The notes under the pieces: generated by a model
The model's database searches: none
What the model was told of the DNA's origin: nothing
What the model saw: the letters and a program-made list of their open reading frames with translations, nothing else
DNA from: Thalia democratica
Taxonomy: Eukaryota
DNA: 64,000 nucleotides
NCBI GenBank assembly: GCA_965202585.1
Contig: OZ241828.1
Span: 53,630,001-53,694,000, forward strand
Reading direction: 5' to 3'
Position numbers and translations under genes: made by a program
In this document: positions 29,029 through 48,500 of the stretch, in pieces
Numbering within the stretch: position 1 is the first letter of the stretch
How the letters are laid out: each line of letters starts with the position of its first letter

Positions 29029-30350
29029 GTAAATAAATGATAACTGAATACTTAAATATAATGATATACATTACTACATTATTTATCTTATAAGCTACTA
29101 AAAATAAAAATAAAGGTACATGACGCATCTTTTTCAAACAAAATAACCTTGTAAATACTGCTACGACATTACAAATTTATTAAGCCGTGTTTGTTTTGCT
29201 TAGCAGTAACACAAAACGAACTTTTTTAATCAATGAGACATAAAAATGTTTTTGTGCTTTTTTCGCTACATGATATAATTCAATTAATTTAAATATTTTT
29301 TAAAGGACGAAAAACAGCAAATTCTCAAATTAAGATAAATTAACAGCGAAAATTATTCAGGGAAACAGCAAAGTAAATAGCTGAACTTTTTATGAGCTAC
29401 ATAATGCCTTTGCGAAAGACTATCAATCTGTGCTGACTTTTAATTAATAGCAAAAGCTTGCGGTTTTGCCTTGCAGATAAATAGAATGTTTTTCAAAAAA
29501 TGATTAAAGCGCGCATTTCTTTATTTTCATATTTTTTCATACAACTACCATGCTTAATTATATTAGCGTAGCACCTAATGTTTAGACCATATGAGTGCAG
29601 AGAAAATAATAGAGGCTTTCAATTTATTACTCTTAAGGCAAACATTTTAACATGCCAACAGTGTATGATGGATTGAGCAATGAAACTTGAAGGAGTTGAT
29701 TATTTACGCAATTATTCAGATTATTTTGTGTTTCTTATCTTTGCATCTCCTGCTGGGGTTTAACAAATGCTTGTAATCTACTTTGGAACTTCAATTTAAA
29801 TGTAATTTCTTCATTAAAAGTTAAAGTTGACATCATATATATTTTTGTAAAATTTCACAAACCATATAAATATTTTTTAAGATCTCACAATTAAATTCAC
29901 AGTTTTTGAATTAGTATTATAGGCTATTTACGAAGCAGAGTAATTTACAGCCCGTAAATGTTTTTAATAAATGAATAATTCATGCAAGCTGCTGATACCC
30001 ACTTAATAATTCACCGCACTCAACAAAACTGGCAAGCACCAGCTTTTAGATTTTTGTTCCAACAAAGTAGTTGTTTGGGTCAGCGTTCTCAACTTGTTTT
30101 CACATTGATTTAAAAGGTCATCAAAATCCCTCTCCTTCGCCATTGAGAGTGTAGCTTACAACAAGTTTTAACGTTACAACATTGTTTTGGGCATGAAACG
30201 TTCTGTTGAACTTTAAAACAAGTATATGCAACGTTAAGTCGAAAAAAAGAGTGTTGCGTAACTTTAATTGGTATTTGTCGTTAATTTTTAAGGTTTAATA
30301 CAAACAAAATTAAAATTTAAAAATAATAATTGTTTTATAACTATAAACAG

Positions 30351-30579
30351 CCCAAACAGCATCAGCCTACAGCCAGCAAAAGTACTACTGTGACCAGTCC
30401 GAAGTTCTGATAGACTGCCAGACGTACAGACCCAACCACCGCTTGTCAATTTCAAGGGCAGAATACGGAGGATCCCAACTCAGTTGTAACAAATTGTCAC
30501 ACAACCAAGGAATTAGTGGACTGAGAGACATGAGCTGTTCGCTGCCGTCTGACAAGGTCCTTCATAAAGTGAAAGCAAT
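30351..30579 (+). CDS. ADGRL: Exon: end of signal peptide and N-half of SUEL/Gal-lectin domain
   Basis: aaacag acceptor, gtgagt donor; QTASAYSQQKYYCDQSEVLIDC..AEYGGSQLSC..MSCSLP; phase 1 to 2. Confidence 0.9.
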
Positions 30580-33500
30580 GTGAGTTTGTGAAGTTATTTT
30601 AAATACTTGAAAAAATGTATTTTTAGACACAATGAACTTTATAACTACTTTTATCGTTTTTAGCGGAAAAGATCCTTTTTAATTTAAGTAAAAATACCTC
30701 GGCAGTAGAAACATGAAAGCGCTTAGTTTGACATGTCAAAAAAAAGTGCGTAAATGCAAAGTAAACTGCCCATTCAATTGCGTTAGTTGAGAAATTACTC
30801 TTGCACAAACGCCCAAAATTTATATCTCTTGTTTCGCTCAAACTTTCGATGGCAGTTTTTTCAGAAAAAACACAAGTCGTTTACATGCCGCTAAAGTAAA
30901 ACCAGCAAACCACTCTCAATTAAGCCGATCTGCGCAGATTGCTTGTATTATCCAAACTTCAACGCTCAAAGTCACATAGCAAAGGGGAGATTGTGTACAC
31001 AGCAGTATGTAGTTTTTGTGTTTCACAGCACACGGATTTTAAAGAAAAGTTTTCTAGAACGGCGCTTTAGTAGATTACAGTTTTATACTCTTTGTTTTCG
31101 ATACTCGCGCTAGTACTCCGTCTCATTTACCCGCTGTTGTGTTTGTTTGTCCACGGCGCAAATCGGTGTTGTGATAGATCGAAAGCAGCGGGGGGATAAA
31201 GATAGAGGGTATTTGCGAGGAACCTAAATATAAATAAATATGTGTATATGTGTTGTGATCGAGAGTGCGTGTCCCAAACAGGTTTATCGTGTTTCGACTG
31301 CAAACAACAGGCAGCGGAGTTCGTGACGATTCAGAGCGGATTTGCATGAGAACATGCCTCTTAGAACCTCGCTCTCTTGTTTAATAATCTCCGTTTTCAG
31401 CAGTCGCTTTTTGCGTTTTTTAGCCTTTTCGCGTAGTATATCAAAATCGCGCTGTTACTGCTGAAAAATATTTCTTAATAATCTCGCTATCAAACTAGCG
31501 ACGACTGATCTGCAGATAAGAGCAGAGGCGAGACATTAATGTTATTAAATTTTCGCATGCCATCAGCGCGCGGCTTGGCTGCGAGCGATTTTACTTATTC
31601 GGCATCCTACTTTTTTTTGAGCAGTAGCTTTTCTGCTGAATTTTTCTCAAAATTTACTAGCACCTCTGTTTAACGACTTATTAACTTTATTGAACACACA
31701 AATTGCCGTTTAAGCGCCGAGGTTATCCGTGTTTAGATGTTATCTGTGTTTACGCGAGAGTTGTAACTTGGTGTTTTGATAACACGGCCACACATGGCTC
31801 GTATTTATTTGTACAACTTGCTGCAGGTGCGACGGCAACGCTTACTGCAAGTTCGAGGTGTCGGGCTCCCTGTTCGAAGACGGAAACGCTTGCTTCAACA
31901 CGGAAGGAAAGTTCCTCAACCTCGTGTACGAGTGCAAGCCCCTGGGTGAGTTGTTTTAAACTTTTTGATATTTATTTTTCACAATGCTACAACAAAGAGC
32001 TAAAGCTTGCGTGTGATAGCCAATTATAAAGCTTTAACCCTTGAGCGGCAATTTGATAAAACAGCCAACTTCTGACGACTGCTTACATTCTGGTGATTAT
32101 GACGTCACATGCGCGGTAGAAGTCCATTTAGGTGTTGGGTTACGCGAGATTACGGCTTGTTATGGCGCATGTGCCAAGTTTATTATATTTTTCACCTCTA
32201 TCTGAGTGTGTGAGCGAGAATTGGTCAAATTAGAAACACGACACCGCGCAAAGGTGCATCAGACGCCCATTTGCCACCGTAGAGCAGGTTGAAGTCGACG
32301 GCAAATTTCGCTGATTACCACGTCATAATGGCTGCGACCGGCGGCAACTTATGCGACGCTTTGATATGGAGACTTTGGTAGAAGTTTAGTCAAGTTTTTC
32401 TTTTTATACAAAAATTCGTTTTGAGTGCGCTTTCAAACGCAGACTTTTCCTTTCAAGGCTGAGCGGGCTGTGGGATTGTGTGCTTTTGCTACAATAACAC
32501 TGAACGAGTATAAAAACATGCGCATAGTTTTGTGCTTCTTAAAAGTTATTTTTGTACAAGCTCTGAGACTCACCTTTTGTAAATTTTCTGTTTAGTTGTA
32601 ATTTGGTTGTAATTTTTGGGGTTAAAAGTAACTTGTTTTTAATGATTCTAGTAAAGTATTTTTAAAAATTTTTCATTAGAAAAAAAATACAAAAAAAGTT
32701 CATTTCTAAAAAAAATAGTATTTAATTAAGCTTATAGATATACAAAAAAAAATATTTTAAGAGTAATAAAATACCGTTTAAAGGTATAAGTTTTATAACA
32801 TTTATAACAAAATTGAGTTGTTTCTTTAAGTTATATAAGTAAACTGAACTTTTTTACTGCAAAAATAGTTTTATACTCCTTACGTTTTTAAAGCATCAAA
32901 GTCATACAACTTTATCATTATTTGTTTATAATAAAGTTTTATCTCTTTAATGTATAAAATGTCAAGCTTGTTTAACCTTAGGTTAATTCAGTGCACATTA
33001 AAAAGATACTTTTTCCTCTCAGAAATATGTTCAATTGAATAATGCTAATTGAGTTATGAGATTCGCCAAATTCACAAATTATTTTCACTGGTCTACTTCA
33101 CAGCTGTCCAGGTCATTTCCTTCTTTGTTACGTCATAATAACATAAATTTGTTTCCTTTCTCATGTTACAATTGCCTTTTTGAGTGGCAGTGTCTTTTTC
33201 AAAAGATAAATTATATTTCAGTATACTTTTAAAGTAAATATCTATTTGTAAATGTTTTTTTCAAATCGCGACTCTCGTATAAGACGTATCTGTTTTTTAC
33301 TACTTTCTTTGATGTCTACTTTTTATGTGGTTAAAATACCTTTTCATTATTTTTTAGGCTTTTCTAGCACAGTTAAAGTTTTTAGGTTGTCTACTTAAGA
33401 TCATGAGTGGCTTACTCATAAATGACGTGTATAACTGTAGCACAGCTTCTAGTTATAAGTTGAATTACTGTGCTTAAAGTTTATACAACAACAATAGTCA

Positions 33501-36500: not shown

Positions 36501-39500
36501 TGCCAATACACTTTAAAAGTTAAGCGAAACAACCGATTTTGCTCGCCTATTTCATTAAAATAGCATTAAATTCGAAAAACTAGCAAGTCCTTAAAGACCC
36601 TGAAACCGCATTTCGTTGCAGTGAGATTTTATCTTTTCGTTTTTGTTTTGCTGAAGCGCAACGTGTTGTTGTGTTATGAAACGGCTTCCCGGCTGCTTTG
36701 CACCCAAACAACTTGCATCCCCACCGCATGTGTTTTGCACTGCTAATCCCGAATAAGTTAATGGCAGGTCACGTCTTTTGCAATAGCGCCTGGACGAGTT
36801 TTAATTAGATTTTTTTGTTGTCTCTCTTTCGCGCAGAGATTATCCACTTAGCACCTTGCTCGCAGTGTGGTGGTGTGTCAAACTGGAAGAAACTTGTGTT
36901 TCGGTGTCTGGATGAACATTGAAAACTCTTGTAACCTGACGTTAATACTTTTATTAAAATAAGGGGAGTTTCTAGCGCTTTGCTAGTTTAAAGTTGAAAC
37001 AAGTGAAACTGTGAAAGTAGAAGTTTTGACACATGCTAGCGTGTAATGCTTTGTTTTATGCTTTCAAAACTGTCGCGACAGTCTTAAAACATATATATGT
37101 ATTTTTCAAGTTAAACTTTTTCAAAGTATAAGCTACTGAAGATCAAGGGTATATTGAACTTTGAAACGTGAATGACATCTTTATTTAAAGTTGTTGGCGG
37201 TTGAAACAACATATGACTCTTTAGCATTGTCTTATTGAATTTCGGAACTTAAAATAAGCTAGAATGATTGACAAGTAGCGTATTTAGTTAAGCATTTTAA
37301 ATAATTCATTAATATTTAATCTAAAAATTGCCTACCTGTGAAGAAAGTAGTCATTTCCGTATGCTTGTTCTATGCTGTTCTGAAAATTGATTATTCGCCA
37401 GTTATGAATTCACTATAAGCGACTAATTGATGTAAGGCTTTATGAAATAATAATTTCAATACCCTTAAGCGGCAAGAATATTGCATTAAATTTGAAAAAA
37501 TGCGACTCTTTTAGTAACTTTGGCCAAATAACCTCTTATAGACTGGCATCATTAATTGACATTAATAACTGCACGCTTATAAAGCTTTTGGTTAAATTTA
37601 GATAAAATTTACCAGCTTTTAATTTAATCAATAGTTCGTCGAAAAGTAAGTTTCAATATTAAAAATTTCACAGCTACATTTACTTTCTGCAATACAACAA
37701 CGGCCTGGAGAACTTGTGGGTTTACGACAACATTCACGATTTGACGACGGGCGAAGTGACGACATTTCAAAACATCCCCACAAGTCCCGGCCCCGACGGA
37801 ACCGGAATGGTCGTCATCGGGAATGATCTCTACTACAACAAGGTTCGTTTGTTGGTTTTTTAAAATGTGTGATTTCAACTAGTGTGCAAAATACCTGCTT
37901 CAAAAAATTGATTTGTTTGAGTTACAATTCGGTACATCACAGTACTAATTTAAAATTTAACTAAAACAACTTCTCGTTGACCAAAATGCGCAGAGCATTC
38001 GGCTTGTTGCATTATAAAATTGAAATAAAAGTTTACGGATGACTTTCTGAGGGGGATCTCATCACAGCGGGTCACGTATTTCGCGTGAAATCAGGGTTGG
38101 GCATCCTTCATGTGGATTATGACACTGCGTTTATTAATCACTGCAACTTTAAGCACTTTTTGAGCTAACTCGTCTTTACCTGGCTAATTTATCGCGCACG
38201 CAAACTATGTGCAAAAAGTAATTATTAGCTCACAGAGCGGCCGTGCACAGTTTGTATCTTTATGAAAACATCTAGTGCTTAATGTGCCAGATAATCAAGC
38301 TTTAATTTGCAGCATGTACTTGAAGATTTTTTCTAATTTTAACAGGGCTAATTTTCGCATAATTCGCCGACGCGACAAGTTTTTAAAAGCTAATTATTTG
38401 GGTAAAATTGTTTATCTACAAAGTTGACAATATGAAATTTATAAACGATTTCACAGTAGTTAGTGTTATTATGATAGCATCTGTATAAACTGGCACACAA
38501 TTTTTGGTAATAAGTTTATTATTATAATTTTTTTAACATATGAATATTTTTATTGCATATAAGCGTTAAATGACTAAATTTTTAATTCAACAGAAACGCA
38601 CGAGAACAATCTCCAGGTTCAGGTTAGGGGGCGACCCTAACAACGGAGTGTCTAGGGATCTTTTCAAGGCGAACTACGGGAACACGAGCCCCTACTACCC
38701 CATGGTCAGCACCGACATCGACTTCAACGTGGACGAGACCGGTCTGTGGGTCATTTACGCCACCGAGGAAAACAACGGGAATATTGTTTTGAGCAAGTGA
38801 GTTAATACCGTGAACTGAAAAAAAATATTGCAGAAAATGTTTGACTGAATTAAAAGGCTTTTTTTTTTAGTTATATAGAGAAAGTAAATAATTGTTAATG
38901 AGTTTGTCGTACAATATAAATGTTTAAAAAACTAAAATTTGATATTTGATAAAAAGTTTATAATTAGTGTGTGAAAAACTACAAAAAAAGCTTGAAAATT
39001 TTGAAAATATAGTTAAGACTGAAAGTATTTAGCCGCGGCTTTTCAAACAAAAAAATTGTCAAAATCAAAGAAAAGTTCACGCTTTATGTAGTAAGAAGCG
39101 TAGGTAACAAATTTCCAATTTCTTTTATTTAGTTTTTTCGCTTGACATTTCACTGCTATATATGACTAATGCAAGAGGATTGTTTTGCCTGAAAAACTTT
39201 TAACGCACACATTTCGGCTAATAAAACTTATAAACTTTCCACTTCAAGGCTTTGTTTGTTGCAACTTTGACAGGTAGAAGAGTCGCTTTCCCACAAGCAA
39301 CTGCAAATTAAATTCGAAAATTCATCGCTTTTGTCTTTTGTCGAATGCACAGAGCGTTCGCAAAGCAGCTCGCTCGACACCAAACTTGAATTAAATTAAT
39401 TGAGCAGCAGCTTTTGTGTATTTAGTTGTGTGTACAAGCGTTTTCAGTTGAGAGCTGCCCCAGCCTTTTTAAAATGTTAAACAGTTTTGATAGCAGTCGT

Positions 39501-42500
39501 AATCTCGTGTTGACAAAACATTTTCGGCTTTTATCTTATCGAGCAACGTGAAAAAGTTGAAGTGCTTTGCTGATAAAGATGTTTGGTATGAAAATGCGAC
39601 TTAATTTTATGAGATACACTGCTACCGTAAACTAACTTGTTTGTGCGAAAACACGACTTCAATTATTACGCAATGTATACTTTTTCTGTTATTTTCCTAC
39701 CTTGTCTTTTGCTTTTTACAAAAAAGCAATTTCAAAAAAATACTTTGTAAAAAAATAATCTGCGAAGAAAAACAAACCGTAAAAACAAACAAAAAATACA
39801 CTGTTTAAAAGCTTTTATCTGTTTCGAGACGTTACAAGTACATATGTCTCTGTTCGGGTGTTAAACAAACACTATTATTTGTTGTTTTTAACATTAAAAC
39901 CCAAGACAAAGTTTAACTTCAGTTTTCTTAGCAGCAAAACTTTTATTGAGTAATAGTAAAAGTTTTCGATACAAACCCGTTAAACTCTGTATGAATTGTT
40001 TTCTACTGCAAAAGTGGATATTTTAAACAACAACATCAAAATAAACAAAGAGCGTTTGTAGAGAAAAGTAAAACAGGGGCATACTAAAAAATTAAATTCA
40101 TGGTTGTTAGGAGCTCCGATCAAAGATAATGTGATATTTTGATTTGTTTGTTTGATTATAAAATATGTAGGATACTGAATTTTATACGCTTAATGTTTGG
40201 CACCAAACTCTGAAGTCGCTTGTATGTTTTCCAAAAGCGAAAATATTTTTCTGAAGAGAGCACCATGCCGCTGAAGCAATTACGTCAATAAACATCGAGG
40301 ATTCAGTTTCAGGACGCTTGCGATAAAGTTTCGCACAAGCTGAAACGGTTTGAATAGTTTCAAGACTTTCTAGAAAAAAAAAATTGGCAGCCTTGTACAC
40401 ACTATGATCAATAATCGAGTTTAATCGAGTTTTAATTGCAATCACTCTTGTAATGTCTTATCAGAAAAACGCTCTAAATTGATTTGGCTACCGCACCACG
40501 TCACAGAACATGCCACTGACGTTTGCTTGGCACATCCGCTGAAAATGATTCTATACCGGGCTTGTCCAATCGAATTATCGCAGCGCTTATCTATCAGCGA
40601 TCCTTTCTATTGATTATTTGTGTGTGTTTGCGCGCGAATCGAACAAAACTGCAAGGATTTTGAGGTTTTAATTTAGCACGGCTCCTTGAGTTTGTTTTCG
40701 TCTGGAAAGTGAAACGAGTTTAAATTTGAAAAACTTCATTCAAACAGACAGCTGTTCACAACTGAGTGCTGCAGACTTTTTGGGCGACACTTAAAAGTGC
40801 TTGAGACTTTGGCTTTTCCCGTTTCTAAACTTTCCCGTTTTTTTCAGGATTGACAGGAACGACCTGAGCATCGAGGAGTCGCACAACACTCCTTACGACA
40901 AGATGGCAGCTCTGAACGCGTTCATGGCCTGCGGGGTCATGTATGTGGTGAATGGGACTTCCCTGAAAATCGACTACATGTACAACACCACCACTTCGCA
41001 AGGAAAAAGGGTGAGTTTTAGATATACATACACATTTTTAGATATTTTTTTGTGTTTAGTGTTTTATTTATTTTCAATAAAATGTTTGTCTCAAGGTGTT
41101 AAGTAAATAAATTATTTACTATCACATGCTACAAACAGGTGAACATCGACGTTCCTGGTGTTTTAAACACGACAACGTCCATCAAGTACAGCTACTACAA
41201 CCACCAGTTGTACGTGTTTGAAAGCAACGGCTACGCCACCCTCTACCAAGTCAACTACAACCACAACGAAGACGACACACCAACCATAACAACCAGCACT
41301 CAAGCGAAACCCGATCCGACCCGAAACCCAATAAAAACATCCACTAAACTTGGTTAGTTATACTAAAAACTTTCAAAGTAAAAACATAATGCGTAATCCA
41401 TGGAATAACCTTATATTTTTGAGCACAAGCGCTAATTTAAACAAAGTTTGCTTTAAAAGTTCAAATTCGAGTAAAAGCCTTCTCAAATGTGTTGTTTCAC
41501 AACAATCGCCAGAGCAAACACGGCAGGTCGACCAATTCGCTCTCCATCATTCTACAAACCGTTTGTTCCTCAAGTGCCCGCGACCCTTCCTCCCTAATTC
41601 ACGGCAAACAAAGCAGGGTATTATGACGTCACAATTAGCCGCTGATTAGCCATCGCACTCGAGTGTATTCTTGTCGCGCCGTTCTTTTTTATGTTTTCCT
41701 AATGCTCGCTCTCTCAGCTGTGTTGCCGACCCGCACACGGGCCAGCCACCCCAGTTTTCGGAAAAATCCTTGAAAACTTGGCAGTTTTGTCGACTTTTCG
41801 CCAAAATGCGTATTGGCGGTACTTGAGAAACGAGCGGTAATTTTTCAAGTTTAAAAGCGCTTTTGTGTGCTTTTTGACATGAAATAAAAAAACGTTGTGC
41901 GAAAAGTTTGACTTTTTATACATGTTAAGCGAAAACTTTAGGTGAACTTAGTCCCATGAGATTGATGCTACGGAAATGTATAGATTTTTATAAAATGTTA
42001 AATAAAGTTTTTGTTTATAGTTTAAGCTTAATCCCCCCTGAACAAAAAAACATACGAGTTTAAACATTTTTAAAATATACTTTGTTCTTTGTTTTTTTGT
42101 GATAAAAAAGGACTTTAAACTAATATTGCAGGATGTGCTTAAAACGCTGTCTTAATTTGAATTTAATACCTGTCTATTTTATTACAGTAAGTTATTAAAG
42201 TTAATTGCCGCGTTTTGGCTAGGCTTGAAATAAAAAAAAATTGAAAATTGTTAAAAATAGTTATATATATAAAACATAAAAACACTCTTTACTTAATAAC
42301 TTACATTACATTTTTTTATTTTTGAAATTGGCTTAACAACTTAATATAATTTATTTACTTATAGATATTGAACATCCTTTGTATTGCAAACCTGTGAGCT
42401 CACAAGGATTTGAATGGGAGAGAGTTGAGACCGGCCAGTCTGCGACGGTTGCTTGTCCAGGTAAAAAATTGAAGAATTGTAAATTTATTAAAAAAAAAAA

Positions 42501-45500
42501 CAACAGTACAGCTTTTATGCACTTGAACTGTAATTGAAATAAAAAAAGTAATGTTTACCAAAAATATAGCTCTAATGTAATAAAACATCATTTTTGTATA
42601 AATCAGTACTTTGTACTAATTACCAAAATCATAACGTTTTGTAGCACAAAGCTAATCAAACGCTTTCGAACCCAAACCGCTTTAAAAAACGATTGTTGTT
42701 AGAAACAAAAACAAAAGGAGCAAACTAGCGAGCCGATAACCGGCATTGAATAATTAATACGGGCGGCGTCAAAATCAAGCAAAAGTGGTGAGTGATTCGT
42801 GCTGTGCACATGTCGCAAATCCGTCATTTGCACTACTTCCACCGAGGGTGGCTGAAAAATAATAGCTCTTCGATGAAACATTTAGCACTCAACGCATCAA
42901 TTAAAGACTGGTGGCACGCGCCATAATCTAGTATTTAAATGCTGTGGCTTTGTTTCATTTTGCGAGTGGCCGTGCCAAAATTTTAGCTGCATAAGTGATG
43001 GCTTGATGTAAAAATGTTTCTGACCTTTTAAAAGCAGCTTTATACTCGTTTTGCACAGAGTAACGGTTTTGCATACTAAAAAACATTAATAGTTTGTTCC
43101 ATAACTCTCTCTTTCTGTAAGCTGTATGTAAATGGATTTGATTAACATTAATTAATTGAATTCAATGTAATTTACAGGGTCTGACAACGGAGTAACAGGT
43201 CACGCCACATGGAAATGCGTGGCAGTTGACACTGAAACAGCCGCGTTCTCACCAGAAGGTGCCAACTTCGAGCATTGCACCAGCGACTGGCTCGTACGAC
43301 TTTCAAGCGAAGTAAGTGAAATTTCACAATGATAACTGAGACAAATAAAGTTGCTTTGAGAAATATCACTGTGTAGCATGTATGCAACAAAGCGCGTATA
43401 ACATGTCACAACGTCTAATTGAATCAAGCTGCGCTCAATTTTCTCAATTCAAACTTTTCTATGTAGAAGTTTTTGAACACGGAGAGGCGTGCAATGTGAT
43501 CATGTCTCGCGTAATTGCATTAATTTCGGCCCGCGAATGCATCTTTAGCTTTTATGGCAAAGTGAATTTCTCAGGGATTTTGTTTGTTTTATGAACAGCG
43601 TTTTTATCTTATTTGTTACTGCTTTGCGTTTTTCTTTGGGTTTTATATTTAGCATATGCAATTCAAGTTTTGTTTTTAGGTGACTCAAGAATCAGTAGTT
43701 GATAAAAGTAGAGATTTAGAAAGGCAACTGCAAACTAAGAAACTGATCTTGAGACCTTGGGACGTAGTAGCTACAATCGACTTGTTAAATGGTAAGTTTC
43801 TGGCTTTTTACTGTTAAGTAAACCTACATTGTTTCTTTTTTTATGTTTAGCTAATCGTTTTTCGTTTTACAAGAAATTAAAAAGAAAAAATGCTGTTGCT
43901 CAAGATTGTGCAACACTTAATTGTGTTTTGTTCAAAGTAAATGTCGCTGAAAATGTCTCAAATTTATTTGTTAAAAAAAAACGTATTATAATAGATAAAA
44001 TTCTAAATGCCGGTGCTTTGACATTTGACTCTAGAGCAATAAAATAATTCTGCGATATGCAACAACAGTTTGACATTTGACCAAAAATAGTGCGATTTAA
44101 ATCGAAAAATATAAATTAAAAGTATAAACTATCAGTGAAGTAACAACGTTCCCAAGAGAGCAGACAGCATTAATGCTGAAGAAAGCTTTTCAGCTGACCA
44201 CTGGCTTTTTAGCTGACCTTCGCGTACGCGCGGTATTCATGACAAAAATCAATAAAAATGTAACAAAATTATCACGGAAACACTGTTTCATGTGCTTCTT
44301 GATGCGCACGCGAGTCGGAAAAAGTTGAGAAGATCGATATTTTGCACGCTCGAGTGGGTTTGCGAGATGCTGCCGGGAGATAAGACGAAGCACAGAATAA
44401 ATTTGCATCTCAGTCTAAAGCATACAATAAATACTGTAAAAACTTAAACAAATTTATATTACTTTAGAATTAAGTTTAAAAAACTGTTATTTTTTTGTAC
44501 AGAAATTCTCGATGCCACCGAAGACAAGAAGCTTCTGACTGCGAACGCGATAGCTGACAACTTCGTCAAGATCGCAGACGTGCTCCTAGACGAGAACTTG
44601 GAAGACAAGTGGGATCAGTTGAATGTGCGCGCAAAGGTGAGGTTTCGTTGTAAATGTTTCAATCACACATTTGTGCGCAGCTACTTTCTTTATGCTGTCG
44701 TGATTGATAATGATCGCGCATGTTACTCATGCCACGGTGACATATTGGCAGGCGGCCATTTCAGTGGCCTCGAAGTGGCACATGTGTCACTGTTAAGTTT
44801 TCAAGTGTTTGCTGTTGTCGATTGTTTTTATTTTAATTTATGTAACTCTTATTAGAGCTTTGAAACTTATTTGAACTTAAAGTTTAAGATTAACATTTTT
44901 ATTTGAAAAAATAATAAACTTTTTAAAATAATTTTCCTTATGTTCTAGAGAGAGCAAGCCAGCCGAATAATCGAAGTCATGGATCGCATCGGCCGCCTCC
45001 TCTTCTCCGACATCAGCCCGGGAGTGAACACCCTGCCCTACAGGTCCACCTTCCTGTCCACCCATGTCAAGCTCGAGATGAAAACTCAAAAGCAGCTCGA
45101 ATTAAACGAGGCGGAGTTCCGTCCCAACGTTCACACCCACGTTAATTTCCAGTCTTCGGACCACAGGGGTCAGCTGACGGGCTTGCTGATGGTGGCCTTT
45201 CACAAGCGATTGGGCAAGTACATGGCAGACGAGCGTTCCATGGGGTCCCAGTCAAAGTTCCCAGTCGATTCGGAGCTGATCAGCGTCTCCAGCATCTCTT
45301 CATCTACGGATGATAAATCAAAGTCAAACGAGAAGGTTACGATTAAATTCGGCGGAGAACTGTTCAGCAAGGTGAACCTTGAGCAATCTTGCGCTTTCTG
45401 GAACGTCACTTCAGTTGAAAACACAAGGTTTGTCTTGGTTATTTAAAAAAAAAAACCAGAAAAAAAATCTTACTGTGATTAAAATTGTGTTTATTTAATA

Positions 45501-48500
45501 AATTCAATAATTCATTTTTTTAACAGAACCCTAAACGGAATATGGTCACCAAAAGGGTGCGCCACGGAGAAGCATCAAGACGGCAGCGTGACGTGTACTT
45601 GCGACCACGCCACCGCCTTCGCTGTTCTCACGTCCAACGACGGGGAGTTCCCGCTGTCGTGGCAACAGAAAATGAGCACCGTAGACCCAACTCCGGGATT
45701 TCCCCCGACCTCGGACGGCCAAACAGAAACAGATGAGGTTGAAGTAGAAGAAGTTCAGTTTGAGGGTTTGTCGATTATCAGAGTGGGTTTGGTGTTTTCA
45801 ATACTGATCCAAATGGTTGTTCTCGTCACCCTACTATTTTACAGGTTTATACAATAGTATTTTTGCAAAAAAAAAATAAAAAGTGTGATAACTTGCTAGT
45901 ATTAAAACCTTTAATCCAATTTTTTCGACCAAAAACACTTAGGTTAATTAACTCTTTGAAAACTAACAGCCACAAACTGGATTCCAACACGATCCACAAA
46001 AACATCGTCGTCTGTTCGCTCGTCACCGGCATTTTGTTCGCGTTTTTCGTCAACCAGACTTCAAACAACCAGTGGTGCTCCATGGTCAGTGTCCTGCTCC
46101 ACATTGGCATTTTGTCTTCGGCCTGCTGGTCCACTCTGTCCTGCTACCACCTCATGTCGGACCAGGGCGAGAACAAGCGGTACAAAACGTACTACTTTGT
46201 CGGCTACGGTGCCCCCGTTTTGTGCGTGGTCATAACAGCAGCCATCGACAAGAGCGTTTATGATGGAAAGAAGATGTAAGTGTTTTGTTTCCTATTCTTA
46301 AAGTATTATAATTTAATGCATAAAAATTAAACGTGACAAATACTTTTAAACTTCTCTTACGGTAAACGTGATACAATAATTGCATTATACTCATTTACAT
46401 TAACTAACATTAACGCTACAGGTGTTGGGTCGACCCTGGTACAAGCTCAATTTACGGAGTTGTTGTACCGTTGCTGGTGGCCGTGGTCATTTCTGTTTGT
46501 TGCGTTGTGGTCGTTTTGAAAAACTTGAAGTCTCCCATGTCTTCTGCGAGGACTGCTCTCACGCACAAGCGTAAATCAATCAGGTTAGAACATTAAGTTT
46601 GTTGTTGCAATTAATAGGTCTTTTGATAAAATGTTTTTTTTTTACAAAATGTGTGTTTAAGGTAGACATATAAAAAACTAACAAATGTGAAAATTACCTG
46701 ATATATTCTGTCATGATAAACGAAAAAACTTTGTCTTTAGAAAAATGACCCAGCAAACCTGCTTCATATACGCATTGATGGCAGCGAAGTGGAGCTCATT
46801 GATACCTTGGATGTCGACCAACAGCAGCCAGATTGTGACCGCCTGGCTCTTCTGCATATTCACCATCATCTACTCGCTCGCCTGCCTGGTCTGCTTCTGC
46901 ATACTCGATGAAAAAGTTTGTTTGAAATTCTAAATTTTTTTAATTGTTCACACAGCTTCATATTGAATTTGATAAAAAAAAAAAAAAGAAAGTTAAACTC
47001 AGTTGCTTATTGTAACAAAATTTAACTTTATTTTTTCTTCAGGTCAGAAGCAAATGCTGCAAATGGCTGCACAACATCAAAAAAGACCAGGACTTTAACC
47101 GCAGGCACCACCACCACCCTGTGGGACCGGACGGAAGGCGGAGACCGTTCGGAGCTACCGACAGTCAGATCAACCCGAACAGCGGCTACCCGCTCCACGC
47201 CGTGAGAACGACAATGCAATCAAACACGTCGAACGGGTATCCGGTAAACGCTAGCAGCGAATCGCCTACCGGTGAGTATTGTTGGAAAAACTTTGATATT
47301 AGTCTCTTTTTGTCTGTTTCGATTGTTTTTTTCTAACTTAAAAAAATTATTAGATTTACTTGAAAACTGACCAAATATTTTTTTTAGATTACCGACAGCC
47401 CTTGTCGTCTACTTCCACCCACGTGGCTCCGAGGACGCACTACGGCGACGAGATCACGCGGCCGCTCATGCAGCTTGCCCCTTCTAGCTGCTCGTCCCTC
47501 CAGCACTGCGACCTCATCGCCAGTTGCCACGGCATCCACGGCTCCACCGCGGCCCCCTGCTGCCACGGCAACTGCCAGCGCGGCCTCGAGGGCAAGTTTC
47601 ACCAGCAGCAGAGGTACTCGACCAACAACGCGAACAGCTGGAACAACTACGTGCAGAGCGGACCGATCGGGCACCGCACCACCATCGCCACCAGCAGCGG
47701 CGGGAAGCAGGTCCAAGTCACCCTGCCCTCGCCGAGCTGCAGCCACTGCCGCGCGAACGACATGCAGGGTGGTTCCCCTCACTACTACGAGCAGCCGCGC
47801 AACCCCACTTCCACGGTCCCCATGTGCTCGTACCAGCCGAAGATCGCCTCCCCGACCAGCACCGTGACCAGCGTCCACCCGTACGACCACCTGCACCAGC
47901 AGGACAGGTTCGCGCCCCAGCCGAGGCAGCAGAGGTGCAGGTGCGGGCCGTTGCATATGCAAAGTGCCAGCCCGCCGCACTCGACCTGTTCCACCATGAC
48001 GTCGTCGAAGCCGGGGCACTTGTACGAGACCCTCGGACCCTTCAGGTCCAATGACGAGACTTCGCCCGTTCAGCATCAGCCCGTGGACGACTCGGTCGGT
48101 CTGGACTTTCACCAGCAAGTCAGACGACAGGTGCTTTAGGTTCTAATTTTGTGTGTTTTTGCGTACATTAGTTTTGTATGATAATTTTGTTTTAAACAAA
48201 TATATTTCATAAAAGCAATAAAATTAAACAAATAAAGTGTTGCTCAATTCTTTTAACGTTTTTTAAATTTTTTTCTTGTTTCTTTTTACACAGGAGTTTT
48301 AAACTCAACCTCGTTGTTTACAGTCGCTGCAATACCAGAGTGCCAATTACCGGCCGGAACGCCAGAACATCGACTGTGACGTCATAACCAGGCACCCCTC
48401 GTCCCGCTTCCACTACTCCCAACACCGCACTCTGCCCGAGGACTCGCGCCACCCCATACTGGAAGAAGACCAGCTGCTGATGCGGGGCGACCCCCACAGG

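Follow-up and report, generated by a model that had tools for sequence, protein, structure and literature searches.

Alanine at the P1 position of the GPS autoproteolysis site in the single latrophilin of Thalia democratica is conserved among its relatives

Latrophilins are textbook examples of self-cleaving G protein-coupled receptors of the adhesion class (aGPCRs). The GPS of vertebrate L1 is described in the literature as strictly HLT. The side chain of L837 in rat latrophilin-1 sits in a conserved hydrophobic pocket, and the kinked scissile loop is held by features that include two disulfides and the hydrophobic packing of the last strand (Arac 2012, EMBO J, PMC3321182). The mutations H836S, L837A and T838G of rat latrophilin-1 impaired autoproteolysis and left surface transport undisturbed (PMC3321182). 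Pohl et al. 2026 named as determinants of cleavage the Phe (F803, of the CxFW motif) that stacks on the His base, the Gly before Cys S12.50 and the flaps (PMC13062082). The motif is now written H-X-S/T, with P1 left open, and 10 of the 32 human aGPCRs are without it (PMC13062082). LAT-1 of C. elegans works without cleavage, and the consensus has often been lost in evolution with the GPS still under selection (Promel et al. 2012, PMC3776922).

The window, which is the whole stretch of 64,000 nucleotides of Thalia democratica DNA analysed here, contains the following parts of one receptor gene.

38570-41354, + strand: exons of this gene that encode the olfactomedin domain (38570-38797, about 40840-41000 and 41130-41260), matching PF02191 with E 1.7e-15, 1.3e-11 and 0.002
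43680-44636, + strand: two exons of GAIN subdomain A (43680-43791 and 44503-44636) and the intron between them, from RNA joints
44949-45427, + strand: exon of GAIN subdomain B (beta-sandwich up to CAFWNVTSVENT), from RNA joints
45527-45844, + strand: the whole exon of GPS, linker and TM1, bounded in RNA contigs by the GT..AG joints 45427/45527 and 45844/45970
45633-45767, + strand: acidic, Pro-rich linker of 45 residues from the Stachel to TM1, with the RNA contig unbroken over 45576-45840
45768-45844, + strand: TM1 (LSIIRVGLVFSILIQMVVLVTLLFY) through to the exon end, from the alignment
45970-47271, + strand: 7TM exons (45970-46275, 46422-46583, 46741-46915 and 47043-47271), from 7tm_2 and RNA joints

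Two of the 7TM exon regions match 7tm_2 (PF00002), with E 1.9e-11 for the exon at 45893-46276 and 0.0025 for that at 46414-46593. The GAIN-A exon (44505-44636) matches Pfam GAIN (PF16489) weakly, with an E of 0.0016 and below the cut-off; the aligned Clavelina ortholog scores above the cut-off (29.5 vs 26.5 bits). An ORF at 30347-30580 was compared with Pfam for an N-terminal Gal_Lectin and gave no match. With the GPS exon as query, a word-index search of proteins returned no match of exon size. The closest full-length proteins come from Clavelina lepadiformis and Ciona intestinalis, where they are named 'adhesion G protein-coupled receptor L3(-like)', and from Ciona savignyi. These orthologs (P0002, P0151 and P0003, respectively) all carry Gal_Lectin (PF02140), OLF, GPS and 7tm_2. 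Therefore, its nearest full-length relatives and the domains shared with them identify the gene as the tunicate latrophilin ortholog. With the 7TM region, the GPS, the OLF domain and the orthology all found, the gene is a single latrophilin (ADGRL-type) adhesion GPCR.

The exon borders were obtained from marine metatranscriptome contigs of run X8. In addition to the two joints that bound the GPS exon, GT..AG joints were found at 43311/43680, 43791/44503, 44636/44949, 46275/46422, 46583/46741 and 46915/47043, all positions being given after small shifts of the cut site. The joint at 43309-43680 ends in AA..TT as mapped, and a two-base shift turns it into an ordinary GT..AG intron (43312-43679). 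When the exons are spliced together in this way, the frame is open from GAIN subdomain A to TM6, the GAIN domain being spread over several exons and a stop codon lying within an intron. The continuity of the RNA contig over 45576-45840 places both the GPS site and the long linker in the mRNA, with no hidden intron. Genome search found one copy each of the GAIN-B exon and the GPS exon; a paralog, or a second and canonical GPS exon giving a cleavable isoform, was sought genome-wide and not found. Both DNA and RNA of this gene were found in ocean metagenomes and metatranscriptomes, which suggests a pelagic animal.

The GPS site and its landmarks lie as follows.

45390-45401, + strand: C-A-F-W in the preceding exon, comprising the first GPS Cys, the Phe (45396-45398; rat L1 F803 / S10.49) and the first Trp of the GPS; aligns with CSFW of latrophilins
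45537-45629, + strand: C-terminal portion of the GPS motif of Pfam (W..GC ... CxC.HAT.FAVL), PF01825, residues 4-34 of the exon piece
45543-45560, + strand: W-S-P-K-G-C, a GPS landmark
45555-45560, + strand: Gly-Cys, with the Gly before Cys S12.50 that is kept in cleavage-competent receptors (PMC13062082)
45594-45602, + strand: C-T-C, a GPS landmark
45606-45614, + strand: GPS triad His-Ala-Thr, CAC (45606-45608), GCC (45609-45611) and ACC (45612-45614), with the putative scissile bond between 45611 and 45612
45612-45632, + strand: Stachel or tethered-agonist core TAFAVLT (consensus TNFAVLM), with Ala at P2' and Thr at P7'

Translation of 45594-45632 on the forward strand gives CTCDHATAFAVLT, in which P1 (GPS.-1) is Ala, encoded by GCC at 45609-45611. 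The exon piece matches the Pfam GPS model (PF01825) with an E of 3.9e-9 and 37.3 bits (cut-off 22.5), and the same locus was recovered in the whole-genome scan with an E of 7e-7. An earlier note on this DNA had read P1 of the GPS site as Ala, which is borne out by the translation, the codons and the Pfam match. The note had also listed His, Thr and the GPS Cys and Trp residues as kept along with most of the Stachel, and all of these landmarks were located; its description of the canonical P1 as a hydrophobic residue packed in a pocket agrees with Arac 2012 (PMC3321182). The His general base is present at GPS.-2 (CAC; CAT in contig L035, from a TARA sample), and the nucleophile at GPS.+1 is Thr (ACC). 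The aromatic residue S10.49 that pi-stacks on the His is the Phe of C-A-F-W, and both the Gly before Cys S12.50 and all four Cys of the two GPS disulfides are in place. The position GPS.-1 lacks the aliphatic residue, usually Leu and also Met or Ile, and has Ala instead. Judged by sequence, P1 is the sole departure from a cleavage-competent site. P1 is the most variable position of the triad, and the motif is now H-X-S/T, which makes the site less exceptional.

The other tunicate orthologs carry the following triads, in which the slash marks the scissile bond.

Clavelina lepadiformis: HL/T
Ciona intestinalis and C. savignyi: HM/T
The tunicate of Logan contigs L044 and L045: HL/T
A second pelagic lineage, contigs L040, L041 and L042 (TARA and Logan): HM-K

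A maximum-likelihood tree of the region from the GPS to TM4 groups the window with contigs L038 and L035 (support 100/99), and the HM-K lineage is sister to this clade (100/98). Both fall with the sea-squirt orthologs and apart from the non-tunicate outgroups; with midpoint rooting, L044 is placed on the outgroup side (92/89). As the sea-squirt orthologs have Leu or Met at P1 and the Ala clade is nested within the tunicates, the Ala is on this tree a derived state, most simply from Met or Leu.

The residue at P1 was read in 127 genuine GPS motifs of homologs, drawn from the 150 best representatives of the homolog search. Leu was found in 99, Thr in 12, Met in 10, Ile in three, Val in two and Phe in one, and Ala in none. 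The 802-Mb genome contains 32 GPS matches, this gene included. Among the 29 exons that are readable at P1, ten have Thr, seven Met, seven Leu, two Ile, two Asn and a single one, that of this gene, Ala. By these counts P1 is clearly the loosest position of the triad in this genome, and Ala is still unique there.

Several features of the other GPS exons in this genome were observed in passing. Thr is the commonest P1 residue among them, and one exon (L016) has HN/T. On contig C9 of assembly G000, at 8.84-8.93 Mb, a tandem cluster holds five near-identical GPS exons (L018-L022) with the motif CNCNHT/TNFAAFMSPW. The small contigs C146, C1502, C882 and C400 carry GPS exons (L005, L012, L015 and L027) that are near-identical to L006, L010, L014 and L026 on chromosome-sized contigs. 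In view of this near-identity, the copies on the small contigs are probably unmerged haplotigs, by which the family counts of the assembly are slightly inflated.

Comparison with relatives was carried out on metagenome contigs. Three ORFs of the GAIN-B exon were found on such contigs, at 99%, 89% and 78% identity. Four contigs belonging to two further lineages (L035, L036, L038 and L039) reach the GPS exon, and all of them encode H-A-T. The contigs L031, L032 and L037 stop short of the GPS site and give no reading of P1, and the GPS exon turned up no relative when scanned against JGI metagenome contigs, from which records close to this genome may be missing. L038 and L039, about 96% identical to the window in DNA, read CDHATAFAVLK with GCC as the Ala codon; L038 differs from the window at six positions in 45576-45840, and the count for the RNA contig is also six. 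L035 and L036, at about 75% DNA identity, read CDHATTFAVLT with GCA as the Ala codon. Over the GPS exon, the divergent L035 lineage and the window differ at 70 of 315 bases (22%). The triad codons are CAT GCA ACA in this lineage vs CAC GCC ACC in the window, and all three changes are synonymous. Nei-Gojobori estimates against the L035 lineage gave a dS of 1.02 and an omega of 0.126 for the whole GPS exon, with omega values of 0.071 for the GPS motif plus Stachel, 0.175 for the linker between Stachel and TM1, and 0.024 for TM1. The GAIN-B exon has a dS of 1.39 and an omega of 0.081. By these values, purifying selection acts strongly on the GAIN, Stachel and TM1 parts.

That the Ala stems from a mistake in sequencing or assembly, or from a rare allele carried by the sequenced individual, is exceedingly improbable, and nothing was found in favour of it. 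The contig of run X1 (Illumina-type), which may be the source sample, is identical to the window over 45457-45875, and H-A-T, with GCC or GCA for the Ala, is shared by the four metagenome contigs, which are independent and come from three assemblies and one TARA sample. A single-base error is no explanation, because the change from Leu or Met to Ala takes at least two base changes. The earlier note had asked whether reads or orthologs show a Leu that would betray a sequence error; Leu or Met is found in the distant sea-squirt orthologs only, and close relatives and independent samples have Ala. Error and rare allele were rejected, as independent contigs keep H-A-T. The change might also be one of many neutral lesions in a decaying or pseudogenised receptor. 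The tunicate latrophilins are indeed fast-evolving with long branches, and all of them have lost the Met at P7'. However, the frame is open in all checked exons, spliced transcripts are present in the metatranscriptome, the omega lies between 0.02 and 0.18 for every part, one 7TM exon keeps 96% protein identity where its DNA is about 76% identical, and the gene is single-copy. Decay is therefore very unlikely, and the pseudogene reading was rejected on its open frame, spliced transcripts and low omega. The independent contigs keep H-A-T through synonymous change and at low omega, which indicates that Ala at P1 is a fixed, selected state of the clade and not an error, a private allele or a product of decay.

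In the second pelagic lineage, the site reads CECNHM-K-SFALLSSNKVFP (L040:933-1217, L041 and L042). All three contigs agree that Lys stands at P1' in place of the Thr/Ser nucleophile. Lys at P1' would make canonical autoproteolysis impossible in this lineage. The sister lineage's lack of the nucleophile speaks in favour of cleavage being dispensable for this tunicate ortholog group. We tentatively propose that the pelagic tunicates may have dropped GPS self-cleavage of their sole latrophilin by two routes, a selected natural 'L837A' (H-A-T) in one lineage and H-M-K in the other, with the GAIN fold, the Stachel and TM1 under strong purifying selection. If true, nature would here have set up an experiment on latrophilin signalling that is purely non-dissociative (uncleaved).

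For the receptor of the window, we lean towards cleavage that is slow or absent and a protein that works as a single chain. The same change of Leu to Ala impaired cleavage in rat latrophilin-1, which makes impaired cleavage the likeliest outcome here and is a direct precedent for the earlier note's expectation that cleavage may be slowed or lost. The side chain at P1 would normally fill a hydrophobic pocket and help to keep the scissile peptide in its strained, kinked turn. As this pocket would be underfilled by Ala, the N-O acyl shift that the His/Thr pair starts would be slow or fail. Most of the receptor at the membrane would then be a single uncleaved chain. Its function would be that of the uncleaved worm latrophilins: no N-terminal fragment would be shed, and the GAIN domain would still hold the Stachel tethered within it.

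Alternatively, the GAIN domain may tolerate Ala and still cleave itself, at a normal or somewhat lower rate, with a pocket or flaps that have co-evolved with it. We regard this as possible but doubtful. The active site fits it equally well, as His, Thr, the pi-stacking Phe, the Gly-Cys pair and the four Cys are kept over a dS of about 1 at an omega of 0.07. The Ala itself is conserved without drift; however, the conservation of a single residue is weak evidence where about 78% of the exon residues are conserved anyway. The current motif H-X-S/T, with P1 as the most tolerant position of the triad, is in line with a tolerant site, and so is the frequency of residues other than Leu at P1, namely Thr, Met, Ile, Val and Phe in homologs and the mixture counted in its own genome. 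Nevertheless, Ala occurs at P1 in 0 of the 127 homolog motifs, and the sole direct test of the substitution, rat CL1 L837A, left the receptor uncleaved though folded. That result comes from one receptor in HEK293 cells at one time point, which leaves room for slow cleavage or for compensation by the pocket, and GAIN cleavage depends also on the flaps, TM1 and the cell type. The loss of the nucleophile in the sister lineage also stands against a tolerant site, since cleavage is then seemingly not needed in the ortholog group. On these grounds, slow or absent cleavage remains the reading that we prefer.

Comparison of the parts following the scissile bond revealed further differences among the tunicate orthologs. 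The linker from the Stachel to TM1 has the same length (45 residues) in the 22%-diverged L035 lineage; it evolves faster than its flanks and is still constrained. Its start (SN..FP.SW) is common to the sea-squirt orthologs, the linkers of which are shorter. None of the tunicate orthologs seen retains the Met at P7' of TNFAVLM: the window has Thr there, L038 and L039 have Lys, Ciona, Clavelina and L040 have Ser, and L044 has Gln-Ser. In these orthologs, the tethered agonist may act otherwise than in vertebrates. The TM2-TM4 exon is under extreme constraint, with a protein that is 96% identical and DNA that is only about 76% identical between the window (45970-46275) and L032:63-371. In addition, the TARA scaffold L031 (693 nt) represents a GC-rich relative that is 62% identical in TM3-TM4 and in which an intron interrupts a stretch that forms one exon in the window.

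The two natural variants, H-A-T and H-M-K, lend themselves to two questions: whether latrophilin needs cleavage for its function, and whether the pocket for P1 is truly necessary or open to compensation. What is gained is incremental and would not surprise the field. Loss of the cleavage consensus with the GPS still selected has been known since 2012, and uncleaved aGPCRs that signal are also known. What is particular here is the latrophilin family, a residue identical to that of the tested mutant, its conservation under selection and the parallel loss in a sister lineage.

The closest described system is rat CL1/ADGRL1 L837A (PMC3321182). It shares with the present receptor the family, the position GPS.-1 and the replacement of Leu by Ala, with His, Thr, Phe803 and the disulfides intact. 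However, the rat variant is a point mutant that was engineered into a vertebrate receptor, whereas the Ala described here is natural, fixed in its clade and by the sequence comparisons under purifying selection. Compared with rat CL1, the GAIN domain is much diverged, Pfam GAIN being barely detectable, and 45 residues are inserted after the Stachel. The sea-squirt ADGRL3-like orthologs have the same Gal_Lectin/OLF/GPS/7tm_2 architecture, the motifs CDH-x-T-x-F-x-VL-S/T-SN..FP and LD.NTIHKN, and likewise an extended linker between Stachel and TM1 without the Met at P7'; they differ in an aliphatic P1 (Leu or Met) and in shorter linkers. The cleavage-deficient aGPCRs ADGRB3 (RLS), ADGRB2 (HLS, uncleaved), CELSR1/3 and mouse GPR114 (PMC13062082) are similar in that the GAIN/GPS fold is kept and selected though the consensus or cleavage has been lost, and signalling goes on. 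What has been lost in those receptors is either the His base or the nucleophile or the pi-stacking Phe, whereas here P1 alone deviates, and in the latrophilin family. The C. elegans LAT-1 variants H528A and T530A (PMC3776922), which are uncleaved latrophilins that rescue all tested functions, provide a model for an uncleaved tunicate latrophilin. They were engineered at positions -2 and +1 and not at P1, and the worm receptor is without the olfactomedin domain that is found here.
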